A stretch of DNA of 64,000 nucleotides from Eukaryota sp. TZLM1-RC (GCA_040285825.1 JAUPSS010000008.1:496001-560000), one strand, 5' to 3'; counted from the first letter of the stretch, positions 1,767 through 62,328 are shown. Notes: a model not told the origin generated them from the sequence alone. Translations and numbers: made by a program.

Positions 1767-2250
1767 CCATAGAGAGATTTGAAGTAAAATTAATAAATAA
1801 TGGATAAATAAGTTTCACAAAATAGCATTGTAGTGATGGGTGATAAAAGCAAACCAATTTTAAGCATAAAGCACCTACAAAGAATGTTGGTTATCGAAAG
1901 GTGTTTAAAAACCGTAACTTCCGTCTATTACTGGATAATTATATAACTAGTCCTCGATGTCATGCATGTGTACGCAAGGGGAAAGAAGGTGAAAAAGTAA
2001 AGAGATATCGAGTACCTAATGGAAGACCATACAGGAGAGCAGAGACATCAACTTTCCTGAGATATGCATTACTCACTTGCAAGAAGTGTGGATGTCAATG
2101 CTGTTCTTAATATGATTCATGGGGTGGTGGATGTGTAACTTAAAGGAAATGAAAGTCCCCAAGTTTTGAAATTGATTCATTTAGTCTTCATATTCCACTA
2201 ATCTCAACTCATTACTGCTATTTGACATTTTTGTGCTATTAGCTGATGTC
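1767..2250 (+). mobile_element. Family-C Fanzor remnant whose 3' end abuts the SART1-like ATG
   Basis: Degenerate IVVMGD..KQTNFKHKAP, FRLLLDNYITSPRCHAC, LLTCKKC; homologous to 51159-51901. Ends in TTTGACATTTTTGTGCTATTAGCTGATGTC. Confidence 0.85.
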
Positions 2251-3181
2251 ATTGGAACATGACACGACTTCACTTCTCTCCCGTATAAAGTCTTCGCGTC
2301 GTAAACGTATTCTTAAAGAACGTGTACAACAATCCAATGCACCAAGTCTCCCTGTTGATTTATTTGACCAGCACGAACCAACAGTTGAACCAACTCTACA
2401 ATCAACAAATTCCCAACATTTTTCTCTTCCTCTAGAGGAACAAGTTAGGCCTATGGCTGAACATTTTGTAGAGGGTGAAGTTGGATTTAAAAAGCGTAGG
2501 AGGAAAACCCGTCCTAGTAAGCCAATATCTATTTCCGAAGACACTCTAACCAACCAAGAACAGCTTTCTTCCCCGGAAATCACTATTAAACCTCCTGAAT
2601 TTGATGATGTATGGTTCCATTACGAAGAACAACCATTAGAAGAGGACCAGTCAGTTATGGACACTGAACAAGAGCAACGAGTGACTTCAGAAACTGGGAA
2701 AGTAGAATTTGAAGCTCCTACTGCATCAACTCTTGACATCTCAGTATCTGATGTTCTCAGCCGACTCAGCAGATCTGTCGAAGTCCCTGTTAGTCAAGAT
2801 GCGACAGATCAAAATTCAAAGAATTCCAAGGACCAAGGATTTGTCCCTAAACCAATAGTACTAGATTATTACGATGATGAAGGGAATTTACTGTCTCCAA
2901 AAGCGGCTTACAAATTTTTAAGTCACAAGTTTAGCAACAGGTTTCCTGGTTTAAAAAGAAAGGAAAGAGAAGACAAAAAGAAAAAAGAACATGGATTTGG
3001 GGCTAAGATATTGCAGGAAAAGTCAAATTTAGAAACCATAAAAAAAGTAATGCATAGTTCACATACTCCAGAGATTGTATTAGGAGAATCAAACAGTCTT
3101 TGGAAGTCTTTTGACTCTAAAGGGGAAAATTTTAGTTCCGATCCAAAGTTTGTGCCACCTAGAAAGAAGTCTAGGAGTTAA
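2246..3181 (+). CDS. SART1: SART1/Snu66-like U4/U6.U5 tri-snRNP protein (short)
   Basis: C-terminal motif LDYYDDEGNLLSPKAAYKFLSHKFSNRFPGLKRKER resembles the conserved SART-1 C-terminus. Confidence 0.7.
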   Translation: MSLEHDTTSLLSRIKSSRRKRILKERVQQSNAPSLPVDLFDQHEPTVEPTLQSTNSQHFSLPLEEQVRPMAEHFVEGEVGFKKRRRKTRPSKPISISEDTLTNQEQLSSPEITIKPPEFDDVWFHYEEQPLEEDQSVMDTEQEQRVTSETGKVEFEAPTASTLDISVSDVLSRLSRSVEVPVSQDATDQNSKNSKDQGFVPKPIVLDYYDDEGNLLSPKAAYKFLSHKFSNRFPGLKRKEREDKKKKEHGFGAKILQEKSNLETIKKVMHSSHTPEIVLGESNSLWKSFDSKGENFSSDPKFVPPRKKSRS

Positions 3182-3692
3182 AAGGTTGATACCATAATGC
3201 TGAACAATCATTAAATAAGTGTTTTTGGAAATAAATTTTTTCAAACCAAAAATAAAATCAAAATTAATGTCTACGGTTTTAGAGAAATTGATTTTTTCGA
3301 CAGAGCAAACTAAATTGCAGACTTAAACTTCTTCTTGAAATAATAACAATGATTGAAAAACGTTCATATTTAATGTTGATTGTACAAGTTTAGACTGAAT
3401 ATTTTATTTGGCTAAGGATAACATTATTGAATTATTACCTCAAAAATATGAAAATTAGTTATCAAGAAGAAAAGAAATAAAAAAAATTCTAGTAGAGAAA
3501 AATAGAAAACCCTGAAAAAACTTGAAGAGTTTTTGTGGAATTGCCAAAGCTGGAAAATTGTTGCAAAAGCCTAACTTCAAGTGTCCTGAAATACCTACAA
3601 AAATTAAGAAAAACATCTCTTTCTATTACTAAAACTCAACCTATTTGATTTAAATAAACCCTTGTCGTTATTACTAGATGACAACAATTTAC

Positions 3693-4925
3693 TTACTGTT
3701 GCATTGAAACAACTCCACCGTGTTTAGCAGGAAGCACATACTCAACTCCTTCTAACAATTCCTGATCCTTCAGCGCCCTTTCCTGAGCTTCCTCCTCTTC
3801 TTTCTTTTCATAAACAGATTGAACAGTAATCACTCCACTTGCTTCCAAGGTTTCGGATACCAAAGACCCCTCGACATACTTAAAACCTCCCCAAAGTGGT
3901 CTATCTTGTTTCTTCTCCTCTGTGGGCTCAGCAAACACATCTCCGTAAAGACCATTGCCGTGAATATCGACAGGAGCCTTTCCCCAAGCCCCAGGAAACC
4001 CAAATCCCCACTTGCCACCCTTTGGAATAGGGGAATTAAGGCCAGGAATTTTGAGGAGAGGGTAAGATGGTGGGGGCCCGTGGCGTTGTTGGTTAACTAA
4101 CCAAGGCGGGGGTCCATTGGAGGGCATTCCAAGTGCCTTTCGTAATCGTAGACTTAGTTTTCCTGGTTTGCATTTGGTTAAATGAGTCTCGTATTCTTTT
4201 CCTTCGTAATAAATTTCCCCAAAAGTTGATAATTGTGGTTTTGTTTGGAATTTAAAGAACGCATCATGCAAAACTTGGTAATCAACCTCAAATCTATGTG
4301 TTTTTGGATCCAATCGCTGTCTCATTCTTGATTTGAGCCCCTTTTCAAACTCCTTTAAAGTCTGTTCCCGGAGACCCACCACTCCCGTCTCAATCACAAA
4401 CTGGGGTATTTTGAAGGGTATCTTGTCAATTCCTCTTTTTCCCTGCAGAAACTTCTTTCGTTCAGACCAATGTCTTGGAACAGATACAGAATTCCTCACT
4501 GACTTCAAATGGAGTAGCATTAAAGGGTCTGGAGCACACGTGTCCCAAAACTCAACCAAATCAGATCTGTCGACCTTCATTTTCAGTTGGGCTACAGAGG
4601 GTCGTGAGAGCATCTTTCTTTGTTTGATAGAAAGAGATGAGATGGATTGGCCAGAACTAATGTCGCCTATTCCGTGCTCTTGTTCTTCTTCAGATTCACT
4701 TTCCTCAGCTGAGAGTTCAGAATCTGAAGAAGCACCTGAGGGAGATGCCAGTCTCTTAGTACCAGCGTCTGTGTAGGGTTGAGTTGGTTGTTCAAATTCC
4801 TGAAAAATATGAGTAAAAGAATCTTCTTGAGTTTGCAGAGGCTTTGATGTGAATGTATCTAAAGAGGGAAGTGAAGTAGGAGTAGAAGATGCAACATGGT
4901 AGATCTTCTTACGTATTTTGGGCAT
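3693..4925 (-). CDS. SF3B2: Splicing factor 3B subunit 2 (SAP145/Cus1)
   Basis: DUF382-like VPRHWSERKKFLQGKRGIDKIPF, LHDAFFKFQTKP, FGEIYYEGKE; PSP domain PPPWLVNQQRHGPPPSYPLLKIPGLNSPIP. Confidence 0.95.
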   Translation of the reverse strand: MPKIRKKIYHVASSTPTSLPSLDTFTSKPLQTQEDSFTHIFQEFEQPTQPYTDAGTKRLASPSGASSDSELSAEESESEEEQEHGIGDISSGQSISSLSIKQRKMLSRPSVAQLKMKVDRSDLVEFWDTCAPDPLMLLHLKSVRNSVSVPRHWSERKKFLQGKRGIDKIPFKIPQFVIETGVVGLREQTLKEFEKGLKSRMRQRLDPKTHRFEVDYQVLHDAFFKFQTKPQLSTFGEIYYEGKEYETHLTKCKPGKLSLRLRKALGMPSNGPPPWLVNQQRHGPPPSYPLLKIPGLNSPIPKGGKWGFGFPGAWGKAPVDIHGNGLYGDVFAEPTEEKKQDRPLWGGFKYVEGSLVSETLEASGVITVQSVYEKKEEEEAQERALKDQELLEGVEYVLPAKHGGVVSMQQ

Positions 4926-4967
4926 GAACTAGTAGCACAAAAATGTCAAATAGTAACTTGTTAAGAC
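4921..4967 (-). promoter_or_regulatory. Conserved start-codon-adjacent leader motif
   Basis: Minus strand reads TCTTAACAAGTTACTATTTGACATTTTTGTGCTACTAGTTC-ATG, matching the motif before the ATGs at 2246, 16148, 51897/51905 and 62324. Confidence 0.8.
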
Positions 4968-5028
4968 TGTGGGAAATTCCCAAATGTACACAATTTTCGA
5001 CGATTTTCGTGTGGAATATTTACAAAAA

Positions 5029-6760
5029 CTATCTACACAGATACTGAGGCCTTTCATTACCACTCATCCTCGCTTCAGCAATCGCAAAAATATTCAGACA
5101 AGCCAGCTTATTTCTGTGAAAAGCTTTGTTGAACCTTTGTTGCTGAGTTCACAACTCTCACTATTACAAGCTAATACACCATGACATGTAGTAACAGGAG
5201 TCTTTTCTCTTCCATAGAATCTGGGATTTGTTACTCTCAAAAACGTAGAAACCTTTTCGAAGCAAACAGGACATTTTGCTGAAGTGAAAGCTTCATTAAT
5301 CATCAATACTTCAAATCCATTTCCTTTTAGAAATTGAATCCATCCAACAGCATCGAGTAGGTCGATGATGTTTTAAATTTTCAAAGCCGCTTTTACCATA
5401 AGCACCCATTAGTATTAAGGTGTCTTTTGGGTTGCCAAACTACTGAACAAGATTTTATAACAACCAATTTTCAGTCTTTTGCTTGTGAATAAAAGCCTGC
5501 ATTTGATGAATGCTCCACGAGTCAAGACTGTTAAAGTCACTTGTCAAGAAAACTTGCCGAAGTTTGGCAACCACAAAGTTGGAAAAGTCTATAAAAGTTG
5601 CTGAATTGGCAGCAAACGCGGACAATTCGGTGTTTGCATCTTCAATTGTCACTTCGTTAGACTCTATCATTTGGTTCCTGTCGTAATCTACCTCAGTTTA
5701 CTTTGTCGCCCATCGTTTTTGTTTTCATTCATCCTACTTTTCAAAGACCAGGACATCTGAGTCATTCTCAACCATCTGAATTTCTTGTCTTGATTCATCA
5801 CCCGACTATTTCTTTGCTGTTCAGTTTCATGTTCAGGCATCATGGCTAGTTCTTGATCAGTCTTTTTACTGCCAAAATACAATACATCACGTTTTCCAGG
5901 TTCACAAACAACAATTCGTTTGTCTTGAAAAGTATCAACATCAACATCATCAATATATAAATCCGAAATACTGGCCTTGATGTCTGGCTTACATTTCTGA
6001 CCCTGTAAATTCCGTCGAACAAATTCTACTGCAATATTAAATACACCTCTGTGGATAATGGTGTTGAATTTATATATCTTTTGTTTGAACATTGGTTGGT
6101 TTAAATCGATAATATTAACCAAAAGTCAAATTGCTCAGGTGGTTTGAAACTATGGATTTGACCTTGTGTATTGACTATTTTCAACCACTGTTTGGGCAAC
6201 AAATCATCAATGTTTGTTTGATAATTGTCCAACTTGTTCTTGTGTTAATTGGAAGACATCCAGGACCTACATTCGTTGATGCAGGGGTAACGTGATGAGG
6301 TTTCCCCTCTCTACTGGCACCATATTGAGCAGTCGTAATTGCTGGTTTTAAGAATATTTGAGGATCTTTCTCAACAACATCTCCAAGAAAGTGTACATCA
6401 ACTGGAAATATATTGTCAACCAGACTCTTATCCGTGACTGAATTCTCAATTTGCCAAGTAAATGGTGTTATAAGACTATAAAATATTTCGTCACGTTCAT
6501 TGTTTCTAATATCATGTTGTTGAGATAAATTTAAAAACTCATCATCAAGAAGGTCTGAAATATTTTCAGGTGCAAGTCTTCAAGAACTCAAGTAATTTCT
6601 ATCATCAACTAAAAATATGTGTTTGAATTTTCGAAGTCTAAATCTATAAAATGAAATTATAGTAGACAAATGGGCGTTGCATACCCACCCAGTTTGTGCA
6701 TTTCTGCTAACACATTTTCCACATCTGATATTTCAAAATAAACATTAATAAATCGATTAA
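5029..6760 (-). pseudogene. Fanzor/TnpB-like nuclease, family B (multiply disrupted)
   Basis: Minus-strand fragments: RIVVCEPGKRDVLY (RuvC-I-like), INEAFTSAKCPVC (RuvC-II + ZnF), CHGVLAC..C, then frameshifted HRNKLACLNI...GNERPQYLCR-stop at 5029. The 5' limit is approximate. Confidence 0.8.
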
Positions 6761-10740: not shown

Positions 10741-10950
10741 GGATACTACAAAAAGAATTTCATGTCAAAGGTTTCAAAAACAGAAACTGAAACCAAATTC
10801 AAAAATAAATGAAAACGAAGAGCTTTAGAATTTCCCTTTTGAGCTTAAAGTTTGCAAAATCAAAGTAATGATTTCACTACAAAAATTTATCAAGTATGGT
10901 GTAAATGAATGTTTTGAGAAGAAAATCGAAGCAGTAAATAATAACTAAAC

Positions 10951-11216
10951 TCGTGGAAAAATCCAAAAATGCCACATACTCACTGTGGTAAATGTCAGGT
11001 TAAATGTCAGTGAAATCACATAGGTGATTATTCTCAATTTATTAAAAATAATAAATGAATAATTAAACTTAATTCTCCTTGACTAAACTCATACTATTTT
11101 AGATACTTGCAAATATCTATGTTTGTTGACCAACAATGGTATAAATTGCAAAACCAAATAATTGGTTCAATAATGATTTGATGTTTGAAAGAATTTGTAA
11201 TGAATGTAAAGTACCC
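10951..11216. repeat. Dispersed ~265-bp repeat, inverted copy of 25951-26172
   Basis: Shared blocks TCGTGGAAAAATCCAAAAATGCCACATACTC and GTTTGTTGACCAACAATGGTATAAATTGCAAAACC...GAATGTAAAGT. Confidence 0.85.
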
Positions 11217-15343: not shown

Positions 15344-15359
15344 ATAAAACAGTCAAAAA

Positions 15360-16148
15360 TTACATTAAGTTTACTATATTTGGAAGATCAACTTCCACTA
15401 TACCGGCTATGGTGGCCACTTTTCTAGCATGCCTTATAGCCTGCATTGTGATAGGGTGCGATGCACCCAACTGATTCTTGTACTCCTCAACAGAAGCAAA
15501 CACCACAGGTAATGCATCCTCAATAACTTGAACCTGAATAGCTAATGGAAGAGCAGAAAGCACACGATCTTTTTGATTTTGATGAATCTGTTGCATTCTT
15601 TTTAATCGGGCTTCCCTTTTAGCTTGGGTCTTGTTTTTGAAGTTTATTAAAGTATTGGTAATATTTGCAAATTTGAAAAAAGAAGGAGTTTCAGCCTTTT
15701 TTGCAGCAGAATCAGTTGTTTCTTTTGCTTCTTCCTTTGGAGCAGAATTTGAATCCTCTTCTGACACTTCTTGTTGTTGATCACTCTCTTGGTTGGACGG
15801 AGCAGAAGTAGTTTGTGGAATTGTTAAGGTCATGTCTGCCGCACTGGATGAGTAGGTTTCAGCAGGAAGATCTCTTTCATTTTCTTCATTGGGAGCAGTA
15901 GAAGAAGGCTGGATTTCATGAGGAGATTCTGGGGGTTTTGAAGGAGGGTTGAGTGAGGGTTCTTCTGTTGTGGGTGGAATGTGACTAGATGATGGAAGGA
16001 CAGGAACATCTTCTATCCGTAGGCCAAGCTGAGGGCTCTCATCACCTACTGGGGGTCCTACTGGGGGTGTTTCAGGAAGGTTTGTACTGGTTCTGGTAGA
16101 ACTTTCTTTTCTTTTTCTGCGCTTACGCTGTCGTTGTATAGTGGACAT
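15360..16148 (-). CDS. Hypothetical protein (basic N-terminus, P/S/E/T-rich, helical C-terminus)
   Basis: 262-aa ORF, tail-to-tail with the 11240 ORF (16-bp gap); ATG lies within the conserved leader motif. Confidence 0.75.
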   Translation of the reverse strand: MSTIQRQRKRRKRKESSTRTSTNLPETPPVGPPVGDESPQLGLRIEDVPVLPSSSHIPPTTEEPSLNPPSKPPESPHEIQPSSTAPNEENERDLPAETYSSSAADMTLTIPQTTSAPSNQESDQQQEVSEEDSNSAPKEEAKETTDSAAKKAETPSFFKFANITNTLINFKNKTQAKREARLKRMQQIHQNQKDRVLSALPLAIQVQVIEDALPVVFASVEEYKNQLGASHPITMQAIRHARKVATIAGIVEVDLPNIVNLM

Positions 16149-16318
16149 CGGCTAATAGCACAAAAATGTCAAATAGCAGTAATGAGTTGAGATTAGTGGA
16201 ATAAGAAGACTAAATGAATCAATTTCAAAACTTGGGGACTTTCATTTCCTTTAAGTTACACATCCACCACCCCATGAATCATATTAAGAACAGCATTGAC
16301 ATCCACACTTCTTGCAAG
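16144..16318 (-). mobile_element. Family-C Fanzor 3' end abutting a host ATG
   Basis: Near-identical reverse complement of ~2086-2250, including the same deletion of the WNRN codons. Confidence 0.9.
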
Positions 16319-17127
16319 TCAGTAATCCTTATCTTAGGGCCGTTGATGTCTTTGCTCTCCTCCCCTATTTTCGCTTTGATTTTCACAACTTATTCTGTTT
16401 CTTCCACTAAACTTACTCAAAAGTGACAAAAAGACATTTATCATTTTTTCATGAGCATCTTTTTTAGAAGGGTCATATACCGTATTTGACAAACATTGGT
16501 ACTCTTTTATTTTCAATTCACTCTTCTTTTTCTCATTCAATGATCACCCCCAACTATTTCATACCTCAAATAAACTAATTGTACAATAAATAACATTCAA
16601 GCAAACATTATATAATGGCTGGTGTAAAAGACCAAATCAATAAGAACTAGTACAATGGACAGTGTATATACTCATAGTAGACCAAGGTCCATAGATCCAG
16701 TAACATCCAGTAATCATTATTACCAATCATTATTACCAATCATTATTAGACCATTTGACCACAATAATAGAAAAGATGGTTCATGGAAAGATGCAAATGT
16801 TTGATCTAGCTGGACCTAGTTAAAACAATAGTATCTTAACCAACAATTCAAATAACAATTTAATTGTTAATTGCAAGTTTTTACGGTAGTAGCCTCCTGC
16901 TCGTAGTACCATGGGAACTCAATGTCAACAACATGAAGACACTGGAGAAGAGAGTGGAAGTGGAGAGGAAGAAATTGAAAGTGAGACGCTTTTAAATAAA
17001 TATAACCAAATAAATTATATCCAAAATGCCATACGCGTAAGGAGCATGGCACGGTCTGAAAGTGATTATGGTATAACACTGATTTTAAGAATTTGAATTC
17101 TCTGAATTTTAATTTATTTGAAGAAAC

Positions 17128-17356
17128 TGCGAATTCCCCTGTGAAATTCACTCCTGTTTTCAACTTTGTCAATGTCTACTCACAGGCTGTAAGAGACATG
17201 TAGCGTCATTTGACAAAGACAATCATGATCTTCAATGGGTTACCTCACTTAAATACACCTTCTGCTTTCACAGACCAAAGCCTCGCGACATGATGTATCT
17301 AAGTGGATCTACCAAATGCTACTAAAGCATTTGTAGATCGGTCTCAAAAGTTTTTA
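17128..17356 (-). ncRNA. Second copy of the family-A Fanzor downstream (candidate omegaRNA) region
   Basis: Reverse complement of ~757-984; separated from its ORF (18123-18566) by the pogo-like insertion. Confidence 0.55.
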
Positions 17357-17376
17357 AAAAAATTAAAAATCCAATA

Positions 17377-18081
17377 CCGTGTTTGTAAAAAAAACTTCGA
17401 CCCAAAGAAGTTCGAACAGAAAAATGTTCAAACAAAGTAATAAAAGTTCGAACATATTTCAGAAAAACAACAATTTATTGGAAATCATTTAAATAACTTC
17501 TAATAACTATGAACTAAATATCAAACAACTATTCAAGGGCTTAAATGCATGCGTCAATGTTTTTGCGAACATGCTCCCATCCACTTAGAATATAGTTTTC
17601 CTCATTCGCTTTCAAATGCTCAAATGAATCAATGATCCACTGCCCAATTTTTGGTTTTACGGTTGTTACCAATAAATTTAATCTTACATCATCTAAAGCT
17701 ACATTGTTCTGTAACTGTTTGGTAATGTCTTTGGTACAGTATTCTCCAAATCTATTTCTCAGCCGTTTTTCAAAGGGTACATTTATAGAAAAATCCAGCA
17801 CACAAAATAAATCAGTGACCTTTGCAGGTATGGGTTCAATATCCAAATTTAGCTCTTCTGCGAGTGTTTACACTTTTTCCAAATCATGCGTATAGTGTTG
17901 GTCGCAAATCATACGTGCACGATCACCAACAGGAAAATTCAAGTTGAATTCTTGTGCCATTTTTGCTCTTTCTTTTTCCAAGTAGGGTAAAAGGAATATT
18001 TTATCTTTCTCATATGTTCGAACTGAATAATGTTCGAAAAGTTCGAACTTTTTTGGGTCAAAGTTTTTTTTACATACATAG
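17377..18081 (-). mobile_element. Internally deleted pogo/Tc1-mariner-like TIR transposon
   Basis: About 42-bp imperfect TIRs (CCGTGTTTGTAAAAAAAACTTCGACCCAAAGAAGTTCGAAC / CTATGTATGTAAAAAAAACTTTGACCCAAAAAAGTTCGAAC) flanked by TA on both sides. Internal ORF 17541-17846 IPAKVTDLFCVLDFSINVPF..KPKIGQW resembles a DDE_1 transposase C-terminus. Confidence 0.8.
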
Positions 18082-18122
18082 TACAGAAAATCAAAATGAA
18101 ATTTTTTTTTCCAAAATTTAAG

Positions 18123-18566
18123 CTTCTGTATGCTCAGGTGCTTTATTCATCTCCTCAACAGAGCATATGGGCAAATGTAATTTTCCTGCCACAAGTCCAC
18201 TTACTTCTTAATTTGATTTTTTTTGCAGCGGGAATATCTCTGTCATATACTATTTGACACTCAGTACAAATACCCATTAGCCATGAGTTTGCATGAATAT
18301 TCTCGGCCATGTAACAACTGGACAGTTTGCTAAATTAAAAGTAAAATTTAAATTAAATGCACTGGTTGACAAGTGCTTCACGTCCTTTTGCTAACACAAC
18401 CATTCTCTGAAAGCCCTTGCTGATCCATATTGGTTGAGTTTTCGGCAATGAGAAGGGAAATTAGCAGAGCGTACAGCAAGGTAGAGTTTTTCAGGATGTC
18501 CAACCAGCATTTGAAATTTGTTGAGGCTCTCTCGGAACCATCTCTCTTTTCGTCTTCAGTTAACAA
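18123..18566 (-). pseudogene. Second family-A Fanzor fragment
   Basis: Reverse complement of ~330-755 with substitutions and indels. Confidence 0.85.
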
Positions 18567-25950: not shown

Positions 25951-26172
25951 GGGAACTTTACATTCATTACAAATTCTTTCAAACATCAAATCTTTATTGA
26001 ACCAATAATATGGTTTTGCAATTTATACCATTGTTGGTCAACAAACATAGCTATTTGCAAGTTTCTAAAATAGCAAGATTTTAGTCAAGGAGAATTAAGT
26101 TTATTCAGAATAGACACCTAGGTGATTTCACTGACATTTACGAGTATGTGGCATTTTTGGATTTTTCCACGA
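25951..26172. repeat. Dispersed repeat upstream of TFIIS (inverted copy of 10951-11216)
   Basis: Direct sequence comparison. Confidence 0.85.
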
Positions 26173-26206
26173 TTTCTCTCTTCATTTACTTCACTAAGAT
26201 CAGGAC

Positions 26207-30059: not shown

Positions 30060-30199
30060 ATTGTATTTATTGAATTTGCACACTTAATTAAATTAGCTCA
30101 ATACTAATGGGACGACTATCATTGAACCAAGATTTCCTCTACAAAATTTTGATCTGCTTTCTGTCTAGCTAAAGCTTCTCTAATTCGATTGAAAAACCG
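30060..30199 (-). mobile_element. 3' end of family-B LINE (left flank of the gag array)
   Basis: Reverse-complement homologue of ~43650-43790. Confidence 0.85.
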
Positions 30200-30367
30200 T
30201 GGTGTTGTTGTTGAACTCAAATTGAATTAGTAGGTTTCTTTGTATTTTGACTGATGACGTGATACTCGTTTATGAATCAGTTTTATTAATAAACTCAGAT
30301 TTCTCTCTCTCCTTCGTGTGTTCATCTGCCTAACGGCATCAATGATTATTGGCCCTTCTTATTTCAG

Positions 30368-31123
30368 ATGACTGTTCCTTCTGTCAACCTCCCGTCTCTT
30401 TCTTCCATGAAAGTTGAAAGTGTTCTCTTGTTCCTACAAGAGTGGAAGATCTATTCTTCTGTGACTTCCAAGAAAGAGCTTGTTCCAGCAAGACTCTTGG
30501 TCGATTCTTTTCTGTTAGAGTCCCTATCTCTCCAGAAATCCGACGTCTCTTCCAGTGACGATGTTCTTCTTAGACATCTACAATCTGTCGTATCGTTCGC
30601 CACGTACGAAGATTTTAGTCTGGCTATGTCAGAACTGAAGCTTGATGTCCGTATTGGTGACGTCCGAGAACGTATGTCCTGTTACCTGCGACGTTTCCTC
30701 CAGGTAAAGAGTAGGGCTTCCGGACTGAAGTTACCAGACACAGCTTTTCTGAATCGATTTGCCAGAGGAATTCTTCCCGTAGGTCTTCAACGTTCTCTAC
30801 TAGCGAGAATTCGAGATGATGTATTCCCAGATCTTCACTCTCTTGTCGAAACCACTACTGATGAGCTGTTGGACTGCTCTAGGGTTGCTTCATGGACTCG
30901 TGGTTTCAAAACCTCAGTGAATGATGTGGAACGTACGGCTGGCACTAAAACGAGGTCCTCTTGGCGCTCTCAGGATTTAAAAAATCAATCGTGCTTCAAG
31001 TGCCACAAGCTTGGACACTTCTCCCGCGATTGTCCTACTAAAATCAAACATGAGGTAAATTATGTGTGTCACACAAACGATGCACCAAAAAGTTTAACAA
31101 ACCCCATATCTTCCCTCTATTGA
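30368..31123 (+). CDS. Gag-like protein with CCHC zinc knuckle (unit 1)
   Basis: 251 aa, CFKCHKLGHFSRDC. Confidence 0.85.
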   Translation: MTVPSVNLPSLSSMKVESVLLFLQEWKIYSSVTSKKELVPARLLVDSFLLESLSLQKSDVSSSDDVLLRHLQSVVSFATYEDFSLAMSELKLDVRIGDVRERMSCYLRRFLQVKSRASGLKLPDTAFLNRFARGILPVGLQRSLLARIRDDVFPDLHSLVETTTDELLDCSRVASWTRGFKTSVNDVERTAGTKTRSSWRSQDLKNQSCFKCHKLGHFSRDCPTKIKHEVNYVCHTNDAPKSLTNPISSLY

Positions 31124-31328
31124 GCCAGTACTGTATTTGTCCTCAGAAAAGTGGGAGAAAGTGGTGTTGTTGTTGAACTCAAATTGAATTAGTAGGTTTC
31201 TTTGTATTTCGACTGATGACGTGATACTCATTTATGAATCAGTTTTATTAATAAACGCAAATTTTCTCTCTCCTTCGTGTGTTCATCTGCCTAACGGCAT
31301 CAATAATTATTGACCGTTTTTATTTCAG

Positions 31329-32085: not shown

Positions 32086-32290
32086 GCCAGTACTGTATTT
32101 GTCCTCAGAAAAGTGGGAGAAAGTGGTGTTGTTGTTGAACTCAAATTGAATTAGTAGGTTTCTTTGTATTTCGACTGATGACGTGATACTCATTTATGAA
32201 TCAGTTTTATTAATGAACGCAAATTTTCTCTCTCCTTCGTGTGTTCATCTGCCTAACGGCATCAATAATTATTGACCCTTTTTATTTCAG

Positions 32291-33046: not shown

Positions 33047-33251
33047 GCCAGTACTGTATTTGTCCTCAGAAAAGTGGGAGAAAGTGGTGTTGTTGTTGAA
33101 CTCAAATTGAATTAGTAGGTTTCTTTGTATTTCGACTGATGACGTGATACTCATTTATGAATCAGTTTTATTAATGAACGCAAATTTTCTCTCTCCTTCC
33201 TGTGTTCATCTGCCTAACGGCATCAATAATTATTGACCCTTTTTATTTCAG

Positions 33252-34008
33252 ATGACTGTTCCTTCTGTCAACCTCCCGTCTCTTTCTTCCATGAAAGTTG
33301 AAAGTGTTCTCTTGTTCCTACAAGAGTGGAAGATCTATTCTTCTGTGACTTCCAAGAAAGAGCTTGTTCCAGCAAGACTCTTGGTCGATTCTTTTCTGTT
33401 AGAGTCCCTATCTCTCCAGAAATCCGACGTCTCTTCCAGTGACGATGTTCTTCTTAGACATCTACAATTTGTCGTATCGTTCGCCACGTACGAAGATTTT
33501 AGTCTGGCTATGTCAGAACTGAAGCTTGATGTCCGTATTGGTGACGTCCGAGAACGTATGTCCTGTTACCTGCGACGTTTCCTCCAGGTAAAGAGTAGGG
33601 CTTCCGGACTGAAGTTACCAGACACAGCTTTTCTGAATCGATTTGCCAGAGGAATTCTTCCCGTAGGTCTCCAACGTTCTCTACTAGCGAGAATTCGAGA
33701 TGATGTATTCCCAGATCTTCACTCTCTTGTCGAAACCACTACTGTTGAGCTGTTGGACTGCTCTAGGGTTGCTTCATGGACTCGTGGTTTCAAAACCTCA
33801 GTGAATGATGTGGAACGTACGGCTGGCACTAAAACGAGGTCCTCTTGGCGCTCTCAGGATTTAAAAAAATCAATCGTGCTTCAACTGCCACAAGCCTGGA
33901 CACTTCTCCCGCGATTGTCCTACTAAAATCAAACATGAGGTAAATTATGTGTGTCACACAAACGATGCACCAAAAAGTTTAACAAACCCCATATCTTCCC
34001 TCTATTGA
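33252..34008 (+). pseudogene. Gag unit 4, +1 A in a homopolymer before the zinc knuckle
   Basis: A7 instead of A6 at ~33863-33869; could be a sequencing error. Confidence 0.7.
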
Positions 34009-34213
34009 GCCAGTACTGTATTTGTCCTCAGAAAAGTGGGAGAAAGTGGTGTTGTTGTTGAACTCAAATTGAATTAGTAGGTTTCTTTGTATTTCGACTG
34101 ATGACGTGATACTCATTTATGAATCAGTTTTATTAATGAACGCAAATTTTCTCTCTCCTTCGTGTGTTCATCTGCCTAACGGCATCAATAATTATTGACC
34201 CTTTTTATTTCAG

Positions 34214-34969
34214 ATGACTGTTCCTTCTGTCAACCTCCCGTCTCTTTCTTCCATGAAAGTTGAAAGTGTTCTCTTGTTCCTACAAGAGTGGAAGATCTAT
34301 TCTTCTGTGACTTCCAAGAAAGAGCTTGTTCCAGCAAGACTCTTGGTCGATTCTTTTCTGTTAGAGTCCCTATCTCTCCAGAAATCCGACGTCTCTTCCA
34401 GTGACGATGTTCTTCTTAGACATCTACAATTTGTCGTATCGTTCGCCACGTACGAAGATTTTAGTCTGGCTATGTCAGAACTGAAGCTTGATGTCCGTAT
34501 TGGTGACGTCCGAGAACGTATGTCCTGTTACCTGCGACGTTTCCTCCAGGTAAAGAGTAGGGCTTCCGGACTGAAGTTACCAGACACAGCTTTTCTGAAT
34601 CGATTTGCCAGAGGAATTCTTCCCGTAGGTCTCCAACGTTCTCTACTAGCGAGAATTCGAGATGATGTATTCCCAGATCTTCACTCTCTTGTCGAAACCA
34701 CTACTGTTGAACTGTTGGACTGCTCTAGGGTTGCTTCATGGACTCGTGGTTTCAAAACCTCAGTGAATGATGTGGAACGTACGGCTGGCACTAAAACGAG
34801 GTCCTCTTGGCGCTCTCAGGATTTAAAAAATCAATCGTGCTTCAACTGCCACAAGCCTGGACACTTCTCCCGCGATTGTCCTACTAAAATCAAACATGAG
34901 GTAAATTATGTGTGTCACACAAACGATGCACCAAAAAGTTTAACAAACCCCATATCTTCCCTCTATTGA
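34214..34969 (+). CDS. Gag-like protein (unit 5)
   Basis: 251 aa, intact. Confidence 0.85.
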   Translation: MTVPSVNLPSLSSMKVESVLLFLQEWKIYSSVTSKKELVPARLLVDSFLLESLSLQKSDVSSSDDVLLRHLQFVVSFATYEDFSLAMSELKLDVRIGDVRERMSCYLRRFLQVKSRASGLKLPDTAFLNRFARGILPVGLQRSLLARIRDDVFPDLHSLVETTTVELLDCSRVASWTRGFKTSVNDVERTAGTKTRSSWRSQDLKNQSCFNCHKPGHFSRDCPTKIKHEVNYVCHTNDAPKSLTNPISSLY

Positions 34970-35174
34970 GCCAGTACTGTATTTGTCCTCAGAAAAGTGG
35001 GAGAAAGTGGTGTTGTTGTTGAACTCAAATTGAATTAGTAGGTTTCTTTGTATTTCGACTGATGACGTGATACTCATTTATGAATCAGTTTTATTAATGA
35101 ACGCAAATTTTCTCTCTCCTTCGTGTGTTCATCTGCCTAACGGCATCAATAATTATTGACCCTTTTTATTTCAG

Positions 35175-35930
35175 ATGACTGTTCCTTCTGTCAACCTCCC
35201 GTCTCTTTCTTTCATGAAAGTTGAAAGTGTTCTCTTGTTCCTACAAGAGTGGAAGATCTATTCTTCTGTGACTTCCAAGAAAGAGCTTGTTCCAGCAAGA
35301 CTCTTGGTCGATTCTTTTCTGTTAGAGTCCCTATCTCTCCAGAAATCCGACGTCTCTTCCAGTGACGATGTTCTTCTTAGACATCTACAATTTGTCGTAT
35401 CGTTCGCCACGTACGAAGATTTTAGTCTGGCTATGTCAGAACTGAAGCTTGATGTCCGTATTGGTGACGTCCGAGAACGTATGTCCTGTTACCTGCGACG
35501 TTTCCTCCAGGTAAAGAGTAGGGCTTCCGGACTGAAGTTACCAGACACAGCTTTTCTGAATCGATTTGCCAGAGGAATTCTTCCCGTAGGTCTCCAACGT
35601 TCTCTACTAGCGAGAATTCGAGATGATGTATTCCCAGATCTTCACTCTCTTGTCGAAACCACTACTGTTGAGCTGTTGGACTGCTCTAGGGTTGCTTCAT
35701 GGACTCGTGGTTTCAAAACCTCAGTGAATGATGTGGAACGTACGGCTGGCACTAAAACGAGGTCCTCTTGGCGCTCTCAGGATTTAAAAAATCAATCGTG
35801 CTTCAACTGCCACAAGCCTGGACACTTCTCCCGCGATTGTCCTACTAAAATCAAACATGAGGTAAATTATGTGTGTCACACAAACGATGCACCAAAAAGT
35901 TTAACAAACCCCATATCTTCCCTCTATTGA
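35175..35930 (+). CDS. Gag-like protein (unit 6)
   Basis: 251 aa, intact, S13F variant. Confidence 0.85.
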   Translation: MTVPSVNLPSLSFMKVESVLLFLQEWKIYSSVTSKKELVPARLLVDSFLLESLSLQKSDVSSSDDVLLRHLQFVVSFATYEDFSLAMSELKLDVRIGDVRERMSCYLRRFLQVKSRASGLKLPDTAFLNRFARGILPVGLQRSLLARIRDDVFPDLHSLVETTTVELLDCSRVASWTRGFKTSVNDVERTAGTKTRSSWRSQDLKNQSCFNCHKPGHFSRDCPTKIKHEVNYVCHTNDAPKSLTNPISSLY

Positions 35931-36135
35931 GCCAGTACTGTATTTGTCCTCAGAAAAGTGGGAGAAAGTGGTGTTGTTGTTGAACTCAAATTGAATTAGT
36001 AGGTTTCTTTGTATTTCGACTGATGACGTGATACTCATTTATGAATCAGTTTTATTAATGAACGCAAATTTTCTCTCTCCTTCGTGTGTTCATCTGCCTA
36101 ACGGCATCAATAATTATTGACCCTTTTTATTTCAG

Positions 36136-36828
36136 ATGACTGTTCCTTCTGTCAACCTCCCGTCTCTTTCTTTCATGAAAGTTGAAAGTGTTCTCTTGTT
36201 CCTACAAGAGTGGAAGATCTATTCTTCTGTGACTTCCAAGAAAGAGCTTGTTCCAGCAAGACTCTTGGTCGATTCTTTTCTGTTAGAGTCCCTATCTCTC
36301 CAGAAATCCGACGTCTCTTCCAGTGACGATGTTCTTCTTAGACATCTACAATTTGTCGTATCGTTCGCCACGTACGAAGATTTTAGTCTGGCTATGTCAG
36401 AACTGAAGCTTGATGTCCGTATTGGTGACGTCCGAGAACGTATGTCCTGTTACCTGCGACGTTTCCTCCAGGTAAAGAGTAGGGCTTCCGGACTGAAGTT
36501 ACCAGACACAGCTTTTCTGAATCGATTTGCCAGAGGAATTCTTCCCGTAGGTCTCCAACGTTCTCTACTAGCGAGAATTCGAGATGATGTATTCCCAGAT
36601 CTTCACTCTCTTGTCGAAACCACTACTGTTGAGCTGTTGGACTGCTCTAGGGTTGCTTCATGGACTCGTGGTTTCAAAACCTCAGTGAATGATGTGGAAC
36701 GTACGGCTGGCACTAAAACGAGGTCCTCTTGTTGCTCTCAGGATTTAAAAAATCAACTCATTAAACTTCTGAGCCAAGGACCTAGTGATAAGAGGATTTG
36801 TAGATCGAAATATATGATTGAAGTTTGA
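36136..36828 (+). pseudogene. Gag unit 7, truncated before the zinc knuckle and reading into antisense LINE sequence
   Basis: Gag similarity ends at ~36756 (QDLKNQ). Confidence 0.8.
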
Positions 36829-46821: not shown

Positions 46822-46863
46822 GCACTCATTTCATTGCTATAGACAATATCTGTAATATGAATG
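46822..46863 (+). promoter_or_regulatory. Second type of start-adjacent leader motif (shared with 56203-56241)
   Basis: CACTCATTTCATTGCTATAGACAATATCTGTAATATGAATG vs CACTTATTTCATTGTAATAGATAATATCTGTAACAATG. Confidence 0.7.
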
Positions 46864-50514: not shown

Positions 50515-51158
50515 TGCTTCGAGTAGGTTAATTCATTGTTTCAACAAAATAAATGTAAAATATTACACTTTCTTTTGAACTTTCTCTTTATCTCACTATA
50601 GTCACAACTCAAGCTCTTTCGTATACAGGGTTTTCGGCAACATTTTCAAGTTAACAAAAGTAGAGCACAGTAGTTCAGTCTGGTTTGTATCATGTAAATG
50701 TGGAGAAACAAGAAGATTAGCTTTCACTGTGGGCTCCTCATCTGTGGATACTTATCTTTTCTTCAGTGTGATCGATGTAGTCCCTCAAATCTTCAAAGAC
50801 TCTACCTCTCATCAGAAGAGGGATTTTTGAAGTCTCGATTGCCTTTATAATTCTTGGTTTTATAATGGAGTTTTATATATAAGAAAAAGTTTTGTATAAT
50901 TAGCAGAAAACAAAAATAGTAGCAATATACAATGGATTTAGGAAAGAGTAAAGTATGCAACCCACTGCTCCTCAAAGAAGAAGAGAAACTCTGAACAAAA
51001 ACCATTTGTTAGTCTTGGATAGTATTAAAAGCTTTAGTATTGTGGTTTATTTAGCTTTACGTTTAAGTTGAGGGAATTCTATTTCTCCTCGTAATAAATT
51101 ACATTTCATCTAGTGTATGCACAATAACGAACAGCCCTACCATCAGTTCAAAAATTCT

Positions 51159-51901
51159 ATAAGGATGCTAAAGAATCATGGATTTATCAAAACAAAACTG
51201 TAAAGGAGTGGGAAGAAGAATTAAATCAGTTTTCAAAAAAAACTCTACATCATGAAGAATTCCTATATTACTGCAAGGCAAAAAACAACTCTTCTCTCCT
51301 TGTTGGAGCTTTTTAATTTTTTTAATTTTTTTAATTTTTTTAATTTTTTTTAATAAAGATAAGAGTCATGAAACTGCAAAGTTTCATGGCCACAGAGAGG
51401 TTTGAAGCAAAATGGATGAATAAATTTGAAAATAAGTTTGGAGGTCCAGAAAATAACATTGTAGTGATGGGTGATTGGAAGCAAACCAATTTTAAGCATA
51501 AAGCACCTAAAAAGAATGTTGGTTATCAAGAGCTGATGAAAAACCGTAACTTCCGTCTATTGCTGCTGGATAATTATATAACTAGTTCTCGATGTCATGT
51601 ATGTGTACTCGAGAGAAAAGAAGGTGAAAATGTAAAGAAGCATCGAGTACCTAATCCAAGACCTTACAGGAGAGCAAAGACTCCAACGGTCCTTAGACAT
51701 GGAATACTCACTTGCAAGAAGTGTATGTGTCTATGGAATCGTAATGTCAATGCTGCTCTTAATATGATTCATGTTTATCAGTATCTGAAAGGAAATGAAA
51801 GACCTCAAGTTTTGCAAAGATCAACTTGATTCATTTCATCTTCATATTCCAGTAATCTCAACAGGTTACTATTTGACATTTCTGTGCTATTAGCCGATGT
51901 C
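51159..51901 (+). mobile_element. Family-C Fanzor remnant (longest contiguous copy) ending at a host gene start
   Basis: RFEAKWMNKFENKFGGPENNIVVMGDW..LLDNYITSSRCHVC..RHGILTCKKC..WNRNVNAALNM..GNERPQ. A TTTTAA expansion at 51311-51352 disrupts the frame. Confidence 0.9.
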
Positions 51902-51904
51902 TGA

Positions 51905-52780
51905 ATGAATGTTACATCATCTCCTCAGCTTGATGCAGCCTTTCAAAACTTTAAAAAAGATTCTTGTGGTTTGGTATCAAAATCGACAATAGCTGAGTGG
52001 TTGACAGCCAACAACTTGAACACAAACGCTGTTCAACATGTTGTCAACACTATGCCCTCTGACCACATCAATCACCAAGATTTTATAACCACTGTCCTAA
52101 AGTTCATTCCTCCTGACTCTCCCCTGGCTTCCCCTGCCATTCCTCAACGACAAACTCTCTCACCTTCGGACAATGAACTTTCTGACACCCCATCCAGTCC
52201 AGAGTCCACGTGCACCATGCCTTCCTTGAAATTCTCAGAAACTCTTCACACACCTCCCCACTCGCCACGTACACCAGTTCTCCCATCTTCTACTAGGTCT
52301 ACAAGATCAACAAGGTCCAATTCTGATAAAAATGCTGCTCTGCAGGAGGTGTTGGTTGAATACGAGAAACTAAGAACAGAGTTTCATCAGCAGTTTTTGT
52401 TACTGCAAGAATATAGAAGAAAAGTTTTGAATGGTAGGAAATCAGTTGATGCTACCAGGGGCAATGGTGACCGGAATTTGGTATATGAATTTTCCAAATT
52501 AAAAGAAGAACTATTGGTTGTTACGAGACAAAAGGATTCGCTACAGAAACAAGTCATTGAGTTGGAGAATAAGGCATCTGCCCGTGAACGACAGTCATAT
52601 GTAGTTCAATGTATGGAAGTTTGTGTAAAGGAACAGTTTCAGCATTTTTTGAATCAGCAGGAAGTATTCAAAAGGAAGGAATCTTTAAGACAGTTGGTTT
52701 TGACTGGTTGCTGTTTTTTGATTGTGATTGTGATTGTCATCTTATTAAAAAAGGACAAGGTTGTACATTATTTTGCTTAA
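51905..52780 (+). CDS. Protein with EF-hand-like N-terminus, coiled coil and C-terminal TM helix (tail-anchored)
   Basis: AFQNFKKDSCGLVS..INHQDF; heptad repeats; LVLTGCCFLIVIVIVILL. Confidence 0.7.
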   Translation: MNVTSSPQLDAAFQNFKKDSCGLVSKSTIAEWLTANNLNTNAVQHVVNTMPSDHINHQDFITTVLKFIPPDSPLASPAIPQRQTLSPSDNELSDTPSSPESTCTMPSLKFSETLHTPPHSPRTPVLPSSTRSTRSTRSNSDKNAALQEVLVEYEKLRTEFHQQFLLLQEYRRKVLNGRKSVDATRGNGDRNLVYEFSKLKEELLVVTRQKDSLQKQVIELENKASARERQSYVVQCMEVCVKEQFQHFLNQQEVFKRKESLRQLVLTGCCFLIVIVIVILLKKDKVVHYFA

Positions 52781-56130: not shown

Positions 56131-56202
56131 AACAGTTAAACTTTGAGGGTGAAAGTCTTCCACTTCTCAAAAACTCATTTCCTCTACATTGGTATAACAA
56201 GG

Positions 56203-56241
56203 ACACTTATTTCATTGTAATAGATAATATCTGTAACAATG
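56203..56241 (+). promoter_or_regulatory. Second-type leader motif before the DDB1-like gene
   Basis: Matches 46822-46863; the CATTGT...ACAATG inverted repeat contains the ATG. Confidence 0.7.
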
Positions 56242-59460: not shown

Positions 59461-59625
59461 TACTGCTTGGATTTCAGTTTTTTTAGTTTCTTTATTTTGT
59501 CTCAATGTTTATGTTAAATTTAACAAGATTTTAAATAAAATTATTTGATCATAATTATTCATCTTTTTTACTATTATTACTAAAATTTATTAAATTTCTT
59601 GGTAAATCGCTGTAAATCACCAACA

Positions 59626-60257
59626 ATAAGGATGTTAAAGAATCATGGATTTATCAAAACAAAACTGTAAAGGAGCGGGAAGAAGAATTAAAACAATTTT
59701 CAAAAAAACCCTAGATCATGAAGAATTCCTATATTACTGCAAGGCAAAAAACAACTCTTCTCTCCTTGTTGGAGCTTTTTACTTTAATGAAGATAAGAGT
59801 CATGAAACTGCGAAGATTCATGGCCACAGAGAGGTTTGAAGCAAAATGGATGAATGAATTTGAAAAAAAAGTTGGAGGTCCAGATGATAACATTGTAGTG
59901 ATGGGTGATTGGAAGCAAACCAATTTTAAGCATAAAGCACCTACAGAGAATGTTCAATATCGAATCGTTGTTAAAAAATGCATCTTCCGTCTATTACTTA
60001 TTATTATTACTATTGGATAATTATATAGAACAAGTTGTCGATGTCATGCATGTGTACTCGAGGCAAATGAAGGTGAAAAGGAAGCATCGAGTACCTAACC
60101 CAAGACCTTACAGGAGAGGAAAGACTCCAACAGTCCTTAGACATAGATTAATCACTTGCAAGAAGTGTGGATGTCTATGGAATCGTAATGTCAATGCTGT
60201 TCTTAATATGATTCATGTTTTGGATGAGATCAAAGTAAATGAAAGACCTCAAGTTTT
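59626..60257 (+). mobile_element. Family-C Fanzor remnant (5' piece; terminus displaced to 62268-62328)
   Basis: Same 5' boundary (ATAAGGATG.TAAAGAATCATGG) as the 51159 copy; GDW, DNYI, WNRNVNAVLNM, ERPQV, then a break. Confidence 0.88.
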
Positions 60258-62267
60258 TATTTATTTAAAACATAACCAAAAATGGTAAAAACTAAAAATC
60301 TATTTCCTCAAACTCCACATCTACCATTGAAAATTTACCATCAACCTTTTCTTCATAATATCTTCCTAGTGATAACAACGAGCTAGAAACAACAATTCTT
60401 AAAACAATTTTTTTTATTTTTGGAAAATTTTTTTTTAAACAACTGGAATATTTATTGAGATAAAAATAACCACCTAGAATTCAATATCCTCCAAACAAGC
60501 GTCACTATTACTGAACCTACTCACAGCATTACGTTCATATTCTACACCAATAGCTAAAAGTGCCTTTGAAATCATTGTTGGAATAGACTTGAAAATGCAA
60601 AAAACAATTCTATTTAACCAGAAAGTGGAGTTCATTGTTTTACCAGACCTATTCAGTAACACTTTTTTAAAATTTTCCAAAAAGTGCAAGCCTGAAGGTC
60701 CAATATTGCCAAAAAGAGAAATTGCAAACTTTTTGATTTGAAATTTTGGAAAATACAATTCTATTTTGCCAAAAGGTTCGGTCAAACATTCTTCCAGTTT
60801 TGTTTTTGACAATACTAGAGAAATCATCTAGAAATGATAAAGCAGTTTTACCCAAGGTTCCAAATAAACAAAAGGCAAAAGGACAAAGAATGTATTGAGT
60901 ATGTGAGTTGGAATTCAGATTATTGATTTTGGGTCAATTTTGTTTCTTCTTGATTAGAAGTTAATGAATTTTTGGTTCGAATTCAATTATTTTGTTCTGT
61001 TGATTTGGGTGGAATTGGTTTTAAAATCTTCGATTTTGTGTAAAGCAGCATTTTTAGGAGTTGACAAAAACTATATTTTTGAATTTTCCAAAGATTCCCT
61101 TATGGTGTTCATCTAATCGATGGTGAATCAAATTTTTATTTGAATCAACTTCAAATTGAATTAAATAATTGCCCAGTGATATATGGATTCAGTGTTTTCC
61201 TCAGGATGTTCAAGAAATTTCCAACTGATCACTCCCAAATTTACGTTTTTGCCTGAAATAGCTTCAGCACCATCTGGTTAAATTATATGAAAGCTTGGAT
61301 TATGAAGTAAGATTTGGCGTGGCCAAAACTGAAAATCCCGCTTTCGTAAATTTTTTAAAAGACATTCGTAATAGTTCTGCTTCTGCTGTAGTAACTCAAA
61401 TTCCCTCTGTTTATGGACTTTTGTTAAAAAAACAATGAATGGCTTTTAAACATGTGTTTTTGTGGTTTTCTATGGCCAAACAAGTTGCCCAATCATTTAA
61501 CTTGTAAATGTGGTAAACCTCTTTTGTTTACTCATCTTTTGAACTGTAAACATTTCATTACATTGAGAAGTAAAATGCATAATAATGTCAGGGACCAAAT
61601 TTACGTTATGTGTAAATCATATCGAGTAGATTCCTTTTTAGAGCCTTTGTTATCAAAATTGATTCTTGATGACCCAAACCACAATTTCAAAAACTGCCTC
61701 CCCTACATCAAAACAATTAATTGCTAAAGATTGAGAAAATTTCCCAAAAGAAGAGAGTGGATCAGAAATTAGTTTTACCGTTCCCTTAAAAATAGAAAAT
61801 TTTTTAGCAATAATGCGGCAATGAAATTTGACCGAAAGAATTCCAAACAGTTTTCATTAAATAGCAACTGAAAAATCTCTGGTAATTGTAAATTTATAGA
61901 CATCTTACATAAAGCTTTAATTAATTGAGGCAAAGTAATCGACTCTGATCAATTTGTGTGGCGGAGTGTTAGATAAGAGAAAAGTTGGAATGTGAAGGAG
62001 CTGATTATGGGGAGGAATGCACATAAAGGAAGAGAGTGGTGAGGTTTAGGTAAAAAAAACGGAAACTTTTTATAATACCTACGGATTTTACCTACGGTAA
62101 AACTAATTTCTGATTCACTTTCTTCTTTTGGAAAATTTTCTGAATCTGTAGTAATTAACTGTTTCGATGTAGGAGATGCAGGTTTTGAAATTGTGGAGTT
62201 TTAGTTGTGTATTTTATGTTTTCATATTCCTTATTAGATAAATAAAAAAATGTTAAAAAAAGCTGTG
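60258..62267. mobile_element. Mosaic of LINE 3' fragments in alternating orientation
   Basis: Pieces homologous to 39800-39940 (-), other RLE tails (-), 19560-20060 and 18582-18830 (inverted), and a LINE 3' end with A-tail at ~62090-62260. Confidence 0.8.
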
Positions 62268-62328
62268 AAAAGATCTTGATTCATTTCATATTCCAGTATT
62301 TGACATTTTTGTGTTATTAGCTGATGTC
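62268..62328 (+). promoter_or_regulatory. Family-C Fanzor terminus / leader motif at the ZNF277-like start
   Basis: AAAGATCTTGATTCATTTCATATTCCAGTATTTGACATTTTTGTGTTATTAGCTGATGTC matches 51817-51901 with small deletions. Confidence 0.85.

Follow-up and report, generated by a model that had tools for sequence, protein, structure and literature searches.

In the free-living, anaerobic metamonad Skoliomonas litria, the right ends of Fanzor1 elements are placed precisely, and in a single orientation, 5' of ancestral start codons of host genes, where they have displaced the ancestral upstream region, an arrangement confined to the lineage of S. litria. The DNA studied, positions 496,001-560,000 of JAUPSS010000008.1 (GCA_040285825.1, listed as Eukaryota sp. 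TZLM1-RC), is a stretch of 64 kb that we call the window throughout. The explanation that we favor, with a probability of roughly 0.6, is start-codon-specific docking of the Fanzor1 right end, which would now act as proximal promoter and 5' leader of the genes behind it. Fanzor1 elements of three kinds (a family designated C, its sibling B and a composite of families A and C) would have integrated in the S. litria lineage so that the right end came to lie directly 5' of a start codon, invariably in the orientation of the gene and with a strong preference for coding sequences starting with ATGTC, and the element tail (its last ~70-100 nt) would now supply the proximal promoter and 5' leader of housekeeping genes. 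The docking cue may be the context of a transcription start together with ATGTC, the complement of a GACAT within the right end; other candidate cues are pairing of this GACAT with ATGTC, or ATGTC serving as the target-adjacent motif (TAM).

The S. litria genome comprises 31.9 Mb with 35.8% GC and 55% repeats, and genomes are available for two sister species, Skoliomonas sp. GEMRC and RCL (PMC11316075). The paper describing the S. litria genome contains no data on promoters, untranslated regions (UTRs) or Fanzor (PMC11316075). Right ends were counted in the window and in further S. litria loci (L002, L003, L004, L009 and L012), ~105 kb in all.

Fanzor right ends at host start codons

The initial annotation, made from the window sequence, had described five unrelated genes with a common terminus. 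An exact 22-nt pattern, TTTGACATTTYTGTGYTAYTAG, is found at all five sites (2221+, 4950-, 16173-, 51872+ and 62299+) where 0.01 matches are expected in the window, and none of 100 shuffled sequences reached five. Alignment of the five flanks agrees with the description of a similarity that runs through ATGTC and then stops in four of the five, the SF3B2 flank ending in ATGCC. Among the long copies, mean pairwise identity drops across the junction from 0.87 in the last 30 nt to 0.30 in the next 30 nt. The ATG of the motif opens a long open reading frame (ORF) in four of the five window cases, and in the fifth it starts a three-codon upstream ORF (uORF, 51897-51908) that overlaps the ORF ATG at 51905; this gene, for a tail-anchored protein, is the sole one whose host start differs from the junction ATG. 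The reading frame arriving from upstream is closed by an in-frame TAG within the motif.

The same junction recurs outside the window. A protein search with the 153-aa relic ORF of the window returned only three paralogues, all from S. litria. When these loci were fetched, blind to context, each held a Fanzor stump followed within ~110 nt by a same-strand housekeeping gene, namely RNA polymerase III subunit Rpc34, topoisomerase I (TopoI) and a 714-aa protein (p714), with ...TAG-YYN-ATGTC at the gene start. Including a ninth copy in front of a coiled-coil gene that lies shortly upstream of the window, four copies outside the window thus have the junction of the five inside. A tenth copy is a segmental duplicate of the ninth and was left out of the nine independent right ends. 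All nine lie directly against a host ORF start on the same strand, with no right end at any other place in the ~105 kb; the junction pentamer is ATGTC in eight. A profile of the last 70 nt of the right end, run over this DNA, recovered the known copies with no further matches, and a motif search of JGI metagenomes gave 0 matches.

The claim that a Fanzor remnant lies upstream of each gene in the same orientation was borne out by PF07282 (C-terminal TNB / OrfB zinc-ribbon) matches or nucleotide homology, and at SF3B2 by a weak tblastx match together with collinear 3'-UTR similarity. Against a PF07282 cut-off of 26.3 bits, family A scored 31.8 bits and family C 27.1 (window ORF) and 27.2 (protein P0002). 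We assign family C to Fanzor1 because its C-terminus matches the Fanzor1 proteins of Parasitella (structure 9cf0, E=3.5e-20 with P0002) and Spizellomyces (8gkh, E=1.2e-12). The remnant upstream of SF3B2, assigned to a family B that ends in the same motif, does so with the exact match at 4950-. Its terminal ~55 nt are homologous to family C, with a nearly identical block of 29 nt (4957-4929), and it is collinear with family C through the ORF end and the 3'-UTR, as a diverged sibling; the coding match is weak (tblastx 5151-5237, 52% over 29 aa, in the zinc-finger/RuvC-III region). The copy at 59626 had been described as split by debris of long interspersed nuclear elements (LINEs), and it indeed halts at family-C position ~655, gives way to LINE fragments and continues from 62262. 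The end at ZNF277 does not form a family of its own; it belongs to family C and has undergone two internal deletions.

The family-C Fanzor genes are dead relics. Their ORFs are C-terminal stumps of 146-158 aa with differing starts and ends, lacking full length and a complete RuvC triad; the RuvC-III aspartate before xNAA is asparagine in every copy, and pairwise ratios of non-synonymous to synonymous substitution (dN/dS) of 0.52-0.84 are close to neutral. A protein function of these mini-Fanzor ORFs was rejected on the basis of the same ratios.

Ancestral start codons and the ATGTC target

To compare S. litria with its relatives, orthologues of SF3B2, TopoI and Rpc34 were taken with their flanks from GEMRC and RCL, giving six loci and ~42 kb of sister-species DNA (L005-L008, L010 and L011). 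Motif and Fanzor remnant are absent at all six orthologous loci, and neither a family-C end nor Fanzor-C coding sequence was found anywhere in the ~42 kb. The element is therefore present at SF3B2, TopoI and Rpc34 in S. litria and absent from the orthologous loci, as for an exapted transposable element (TE). In five of the six loci the sister upstream region measures only 43-160 bp (43 bp at GEMRC SF3B2, 52-60 bp at TopoI and 160 bp at Rpc34) and is often common to a divergent neighbor.

The coding starts themselves are conserved. SF3B2 begins MPKIRKK in both S. litria and RCL (ATGCC) and MAKIRKK in GEMRC (ATGGC); Rpc34 begins MSKK in S. litria and RCL and MSRK in GEMRC, with ATGTC in all three; and GEMRC TopoI begins MSSSS.. 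(ATGTC), no more than two codons away from the MSDSE start of S. litria. Because orthologues without the element start at the same codon, the junction ATG, with the following TC in Rpc34 and TopoI, is on this comparison an ancestral host feature of the target site. The initial annotation had posed beforehand the question whether ATGTC belongs to the element or to the target, and the answer from these three genes is the target.

This comparison also bears on the possibility that the elements captured, or home to, a motif older than themselves that serves the host as a generic promoter or leader. Such a reading could draw on the occurrence of the motif at about one quarter of the host genes sampled and on the existence of a second, unrelated shared leader. 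However, similarity continues unbroken from the motif into Fanzor 3'-UTR and coding sequence in six to seven of the nine copies, 67-70 nt of Fanzor 3'-UTR remain in the shortest copies as well, and the motif is missing from the six orthologous loci and the ~42 kb of sister DNA. We therefore regard a pre-existing host promoter as very improbable.

The second leader, CACTYATTTCATTG...AATATCTGTAA, lies at 46823-46860 (+) before the ATG of a DOCK-like gene and at 56204-56238 before an RSE1/SF3B3-like gene. Its first half alone is found at L002:6209(-), 1 nt before an ATG, so that the distance to the ATG is not fixed, and no Fanzor body is adjacent to it in the window.

The distribution of right ends points to a choice of target. 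The S. litria sample holds 252 ATGTC pentamers, of which none but those at start codons is occupied. The leader is present at each of the seven independent host genes with an ATGTC start, and a family-C end is found at 0 of ~20 other gene starts; the class of ATGTC-start genes is apparently saturated. Since ATGTC opens only three of 15 (~20%) of the sister-species genes sampled, its presence at eight of nine junctions indicates a target preference. Repeats make up half of the genome; insertions there would be neutral, and LINE debris of much greater age has persisted in them, yet every family-C end in the sample sits at a start codon. From this we infer that docking reflects target choice by a once-active element, since random insertion with subsequent selection does not account for the pattern.

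Every copy has a sharply defined right end, and the common 3' boundary contrasts with 5' extents that range from 67 bp to >1.4 kb. This pattern would also be produced if breaks at start codons had been mended by copying from an existing right end, primed by ATGTC microhomology, or if leaders had undergone gene conversion; tracts would then begin at ATGTC and run a variable distance upstream. The leader of a hypothetical 262-aa gene (hyp262) is such a tract, a 218-bp copy of the SART1 leader with 95% identity and unrelated DNA upstream, and the failure to find a left end or target-site duplication also speaks for break repair. Later deletion and TE insertion explain the variable 5' ends equally well, however, as the ZNF277 copy split by LINE debris illustrates. 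In addition, break repair leaves unexplained why breaks should occur at start codons only, and the long copies are about equally diverged, as in a transposition burst. Overall we consider break repair unlikely.

A retrocopy model for the whole genes was also tried and rejected; poly(A) tracts are lacking, and the stop codon of hyp262 lies 16 nt from that of its convergent neighbor.

Promoter, leader and guide RNA readings of the element tail

Skoliomonas promoters and 5'-UTRs apparently fit into a few tens of bp and the genes concerned are essential and single-copy, which argues for the docked tail being their promoter and leader. Only element sequence lies upstream of the essential single-copy S. 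litria genes. The role as a leader is further supported by the most eroded copies, which still keep 67-70 nt. No ATG occurs within at least 74 nt upstream in any copy, a weak point since the copies share ancestry. A search for a promoter motif common to the upstream regions of other genes gave nothing clear in a sample too small for the purpose, and a scan for bacterial promoters and terminators gave nothing informative. The element end had been proposed as a portable promoter/5'-UTR that supplies the ATG; the promoter or leader part of this proposal is the most likely reading of the tail, and the ATG is, in the three genes compared, the host's own.

Several points weigh against docking with a replacement promoter. 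The S. litria sample of ~105 kb represents ~0.3% of the 31.9-Mb genome. The ancestral ATG rests on three genes only, and the RCL model of TopoI begins 12 codons further upstream. Microsynteny of SF3B2, TopoI and Rpc34 with the sister species is absent on both sides, so that no strictly empty site was seen. All copies are 5'-eroded, and neither a transposase nor an intact left end or a target-site duplication could be identified for any of them. The terminal 30 nt of the long copies (87% identity) are not conserved above the element body (75-93%), and thus give no sign of extra purifying selection. Finally, transcription start, promoter activity and any splicing are deduced from sequence.

RCL and GEMRC share a neighbor of Rpc34 (an adaptor-complex subunit), with gene order otherwise heavily shuffled. 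In the search for a left end, L004/L012 and L002 reached ~1.45 kb upstream of the right end, where the sequence is too decayed.

The tail could alternatively hold a mini-intron or acceptor within a 5'-UTR, where transcription would start further upstream, within the tail or within the Fanzor remnant, and a GT...AG intron of 25-32 nt would be removed 3 nt before the ATG. The block best conserved between families B and C does run from GT to AG over 29 nt (51865-51893; 4957-4929), with equivalents also in L002, L003 and L009, GT is kept in six of the nine copies, and annotated Skoliomonas introns are 29-34 nt long with GTTTG...YAG ends. In the subfamily comprising SART1, hyp262 and p714, however, AT replaces GT, the 5' site GTTAC departs from GTTTG, and a branch-point-like motif 6-8 nt before the AG, seen in four example introns, is absent. 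As a rival to the docking explanation the intron therefore seems doubtful, although a mini-intron within an element-derived leader is possible and would be compatible with it.

A further reading assigns the junction to RNA-guided regulation. Under the rule established for TnpB and Fanzor, the guide is the flank of the right end and the TAM matches the insertion site (PMC10312701). In a system resembling the TldR regulators, the Fanzor 3' end would give rise to an omegaRNA guided by the first codons of the adjacent gene, and a nuclease-dead Fanzor would bind the gene start with ATGTC as TAM, for transcription control or homing. The geometry fits the guide and TAM rule (PMC10312701), the RuvC-III aspartate has changed to asparagine in every family-C copy, and 8-11 bp of long-range pairing are predicted between the NVN codons and the terminal TTGACATT. 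At the copy before the tail-anchored gene, the RuvC-III codons (AATGTCAA, 51740-51752) are complementary to the terminal TTGACATT (51872-51884) ~135 nt downstream. This AATGTCAA/TTGACATT pairing is kept in four of the five long copies and broken in the TopoI copy. Compensatory pairs number one in the long-range stem and two among all 28 predicted pairs, in five near-identical sequences.

Other evidence runs counter to a guided regulator. Besides the broken pairing at TopoI, the stability of the 3' region equals that of shuffled sequences (z = -0.03), the shortest copies (67-70 nt) are too small to encode a scaffold, the local ORFs are ~150-aa C-terminal stumps that lack RuvC-I and evolve close to neutrality, and no full-length family-C protein was seen. 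A TldR would be full-length and under purifying selection with only the nuclease lost; the S. litria ORFs are truncated, with the near-neutral dN/dS given above. Because the adjacent Fanzor genes are truncated, near-neutral and mutated in RuvC-III, any omegaRNA would have to rely on a protein encoded at another genomic locus. An Rfam search, spliced-leader (SL) RNA included, returned no matches. The terminal inverted repeat GACAT...ATGTC that had been proposed does exist, but it is degraded in four of nine copies (G-T/G-U wobble in two, one mismatch at SF3B2 and two at TopoI), with no compensatory change and no measurable added stability. The geometry thus permits an omegaRNA and nothing in the sequence positively supports it, and we rate a TldR-like system as decidedly improbable.

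We also put forward, tentatively, a stronger form of the docking explanation, in which Fanzor1 integrates at the ATGTC starts of RNA polymerase II (Pol II) genes with a replacement promoter in its right end, has saturated this class of genes, and recognizes it perhaps by nucleic-acid guidance. If this were true, a gene that is hit would survive and a large share of housekeeping promoters would be Fanzor-derived; with GACAT pairing or ATGTC as TAM, native omegaRNA guides would be the first codons of host genes.

Other elements, known systems and significance

Family-A Fanzor 3' parts in the window have sharp right ends at 982 and 17133, away from gene starts (Table 1), and docking is therefore a property of C/B-type ends and not of all Fanzors. 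The whole gene to which the part at 1-982 belongs (L009:6527-8486) is frameshifted and keeps the GVDLG and DRD motifs. A family-A part and a family-C tail occur twice in the same order (328-982 / 2033-2250 and 18566-17133 / 16361-16144), with a spacing of ~770-1050 bp at the two loci and unrelated spacers, and may represent a composite element or independent events. A leader of 114 bp, 84% identical at its two sites, stands before the family-A Fanzor gene with its ATGTCAGAC start (L009:6424-6535), so that this gene too begins ATGTC behind a repeated leader, and before a decayed Fanzor-like region upstream of the p714 family-C copy (L004:967-1080); the two sites yielded no left end. Both the family-A Fanzor and the coiled-coil gene behind its family-C leader lie within an inverted segmental duplication that also takes in a 232-aa gene, with arms ~21 kb apart (L012:14500-20456 vs L009:4000-8740).

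Two further repeats were noted in the window. An inverted repeat of 78% identity (10948-11216 / 25951-26175) lies just upstream of a 1367-aa gene and of TFIIS, and is probably another TE fragment in promoter position. A tandem array at 30199-36756 consists of approximately seven units of ~960 bp, 98-99% identical, with a 251-aa zinc-knuckle (gag-like) ORF.

Table 1. Fanzor remnants, junctions and adjoining features, in window coordinates unless a locus label is given
Feature	Position	Strand	Remarks
Family-A Fanzor 3' part	1..982	+	Sharp right end at 982, away from gene start
Family-C Fanzor1 remnant	1766..2250	+	5'-eroded, ORF broken; nucleotide homology 1766-2250
SART1 junction	2221-2242 (motif)	+	Motif, CTG, ATGTC; fused to SART1-like start
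SART1-like host gene	2246..3181	+	311 aa; starts ATGTC
SF3B2 host gene	3693..4925	-	DUF382 + PSP; N-terminus MPKIRKK
Family-B Fanzor remnant	4921..5237	-	End ...CTAG TTC ATGCC
Hypothetical gene hyp262	15360-16148	-	262 aa; fused to 218-bp fragment
Family-C terminal fragment	16144..16361	-	218 bp; 95% identical to 2033-2250
Second family-A Fanzor 3' part	17133..18566	-	Same sharp end at 17133; 85-94% identical to 328-982, 754-bp insertion
Family-C copy	51149..51901	+	72-nt tail, ATGTC at 51897; extra piece 50963-51004
Relic ORF	51368-51829	+	153 aa; NRN replacing RuvC-III DRD; PF07282
uORF and tail-anchored protein gene	51897..52780	+	uORF ATG TCT GAA TGA overlapping ATG 51905; protein of 291 aa
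Family-C body	59626..60257	+	Family positions ~1-655; ORF 59905-60288 with PF07282
LINE fragments	60258-62261		~2 kb, splitting body from tail of the 59626 copy
Tail of the 59626 family-C copy	62262..62328	+	Two internal deletions; fused to ATGTC
ZNF277-like host gene	62324-63430	+	
Ninth copy	L009:6267-6338	-	Before coiled-coil gene just upstream of window

The S. litria elements share with characterized Fanzor1 and TnpB proteins (Spizellomyces SpuFz1, Parasitella PpFz1 and ISDra2 TnpB) a homologous C-terminus with a zinc ribbon, DEYRTS and the xRDxNAA region, as well as a short non-coding tail from the stop codon to the element end, beyond which the flank would be the guide. They differ in that their right ends lie exactly at host starts in the orientation of the gene, that the family is decayed and mutated in RuvC-III, and that any terminal inverted repeat, left end or omegaRNA is putative. 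Site-specific retroelements provide another comparison: Ty3 targets RNA polymerase III (Pol III) start sites, SLACS/CZAR/CRE the spliced-leader genes and R2 the 28S ribosomal DNA, by integrase tethering or a sequence-specific endonuclease, and the targets are repeated or Pol III genes. As with these, insertion in S. litria is nucleotide-precise and oriented, at a functional position and at many loci; unlike them, the element is a Fanzor DNA element that inserts at protein-coding Pol II genes, each of them unique and with nothing but ATGTC in common.

Bacterial insertion sequence (IS) elements are known to activate neighboring genes, and eukaryotic TE promoters have been exapted. In S. litria, likewise, the end of a mobile element has taken the place of the native upstream region and presumably drives the neighboring gene, but here the junction falls repeatedly at the start codon and the ATGTC class is apparently saturated, which sets it apart from chance events. 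The TldR proteins of bacteria are nuclease-dead, TnpB-derived, RNA-guided repressors, full-length and conserved, with a promoter target in trans. A catalytic RuvC residue has also been lost here in a TnpB-family protein beside host genes, although the S. litria ORFs are truncated and nearly neutral. The ends of IS200/IS605 elements contain a DNA guide that pairs with the site of cleavage or the target, and the target motif is at the left end. The internal GACAT of the S. litria right end similarly complements the flanking ATGTC, with a small palindrome in between; here, however, ATGTC is at the right end and the complementarity shows no compensatory changes. No Y1 (HUH) TnpA ORF was found in or near the copies, and the 5-bp stem at the terminus, besides being weak, is not conserved.

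Fanzor1 is a known protein family, and promoters derived from TEs and insertion at specific sites are phenomena of known kinds; we could find no account of Fanzor right ends that dock repeatedly and to the nucleotide on ancestral starts, with ATGTC-start genes apparently saturated. A full-text literature search for Fanzor together with start codon did not turn up the pattern. To our knowledge, start-codon docking has not been reported for any Fanzor or TnpB element, and, if the pattern holds genome-wide, we know of no earlier Fanzor/TnpB-type element with a defined eukaryotic genomic niche, in this case the protein-coding start codon. Genome-wide docking would amount to a transposon strategy in which the element docks on an ATG with a spare promoter, so that insertion into an essential gene is harmless. 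A large fraction of the promoters of a free-living protist would then be transposon right ends, a wholesale promoter replacement. The guides of Fanzor omegaRNAs in a native host (5' coding sequences) and the role of ATGTC as TAM would likewise become testable. For work on metamonads, the tail of 67-100 nt is a candidate for a minimal, portable promoter.

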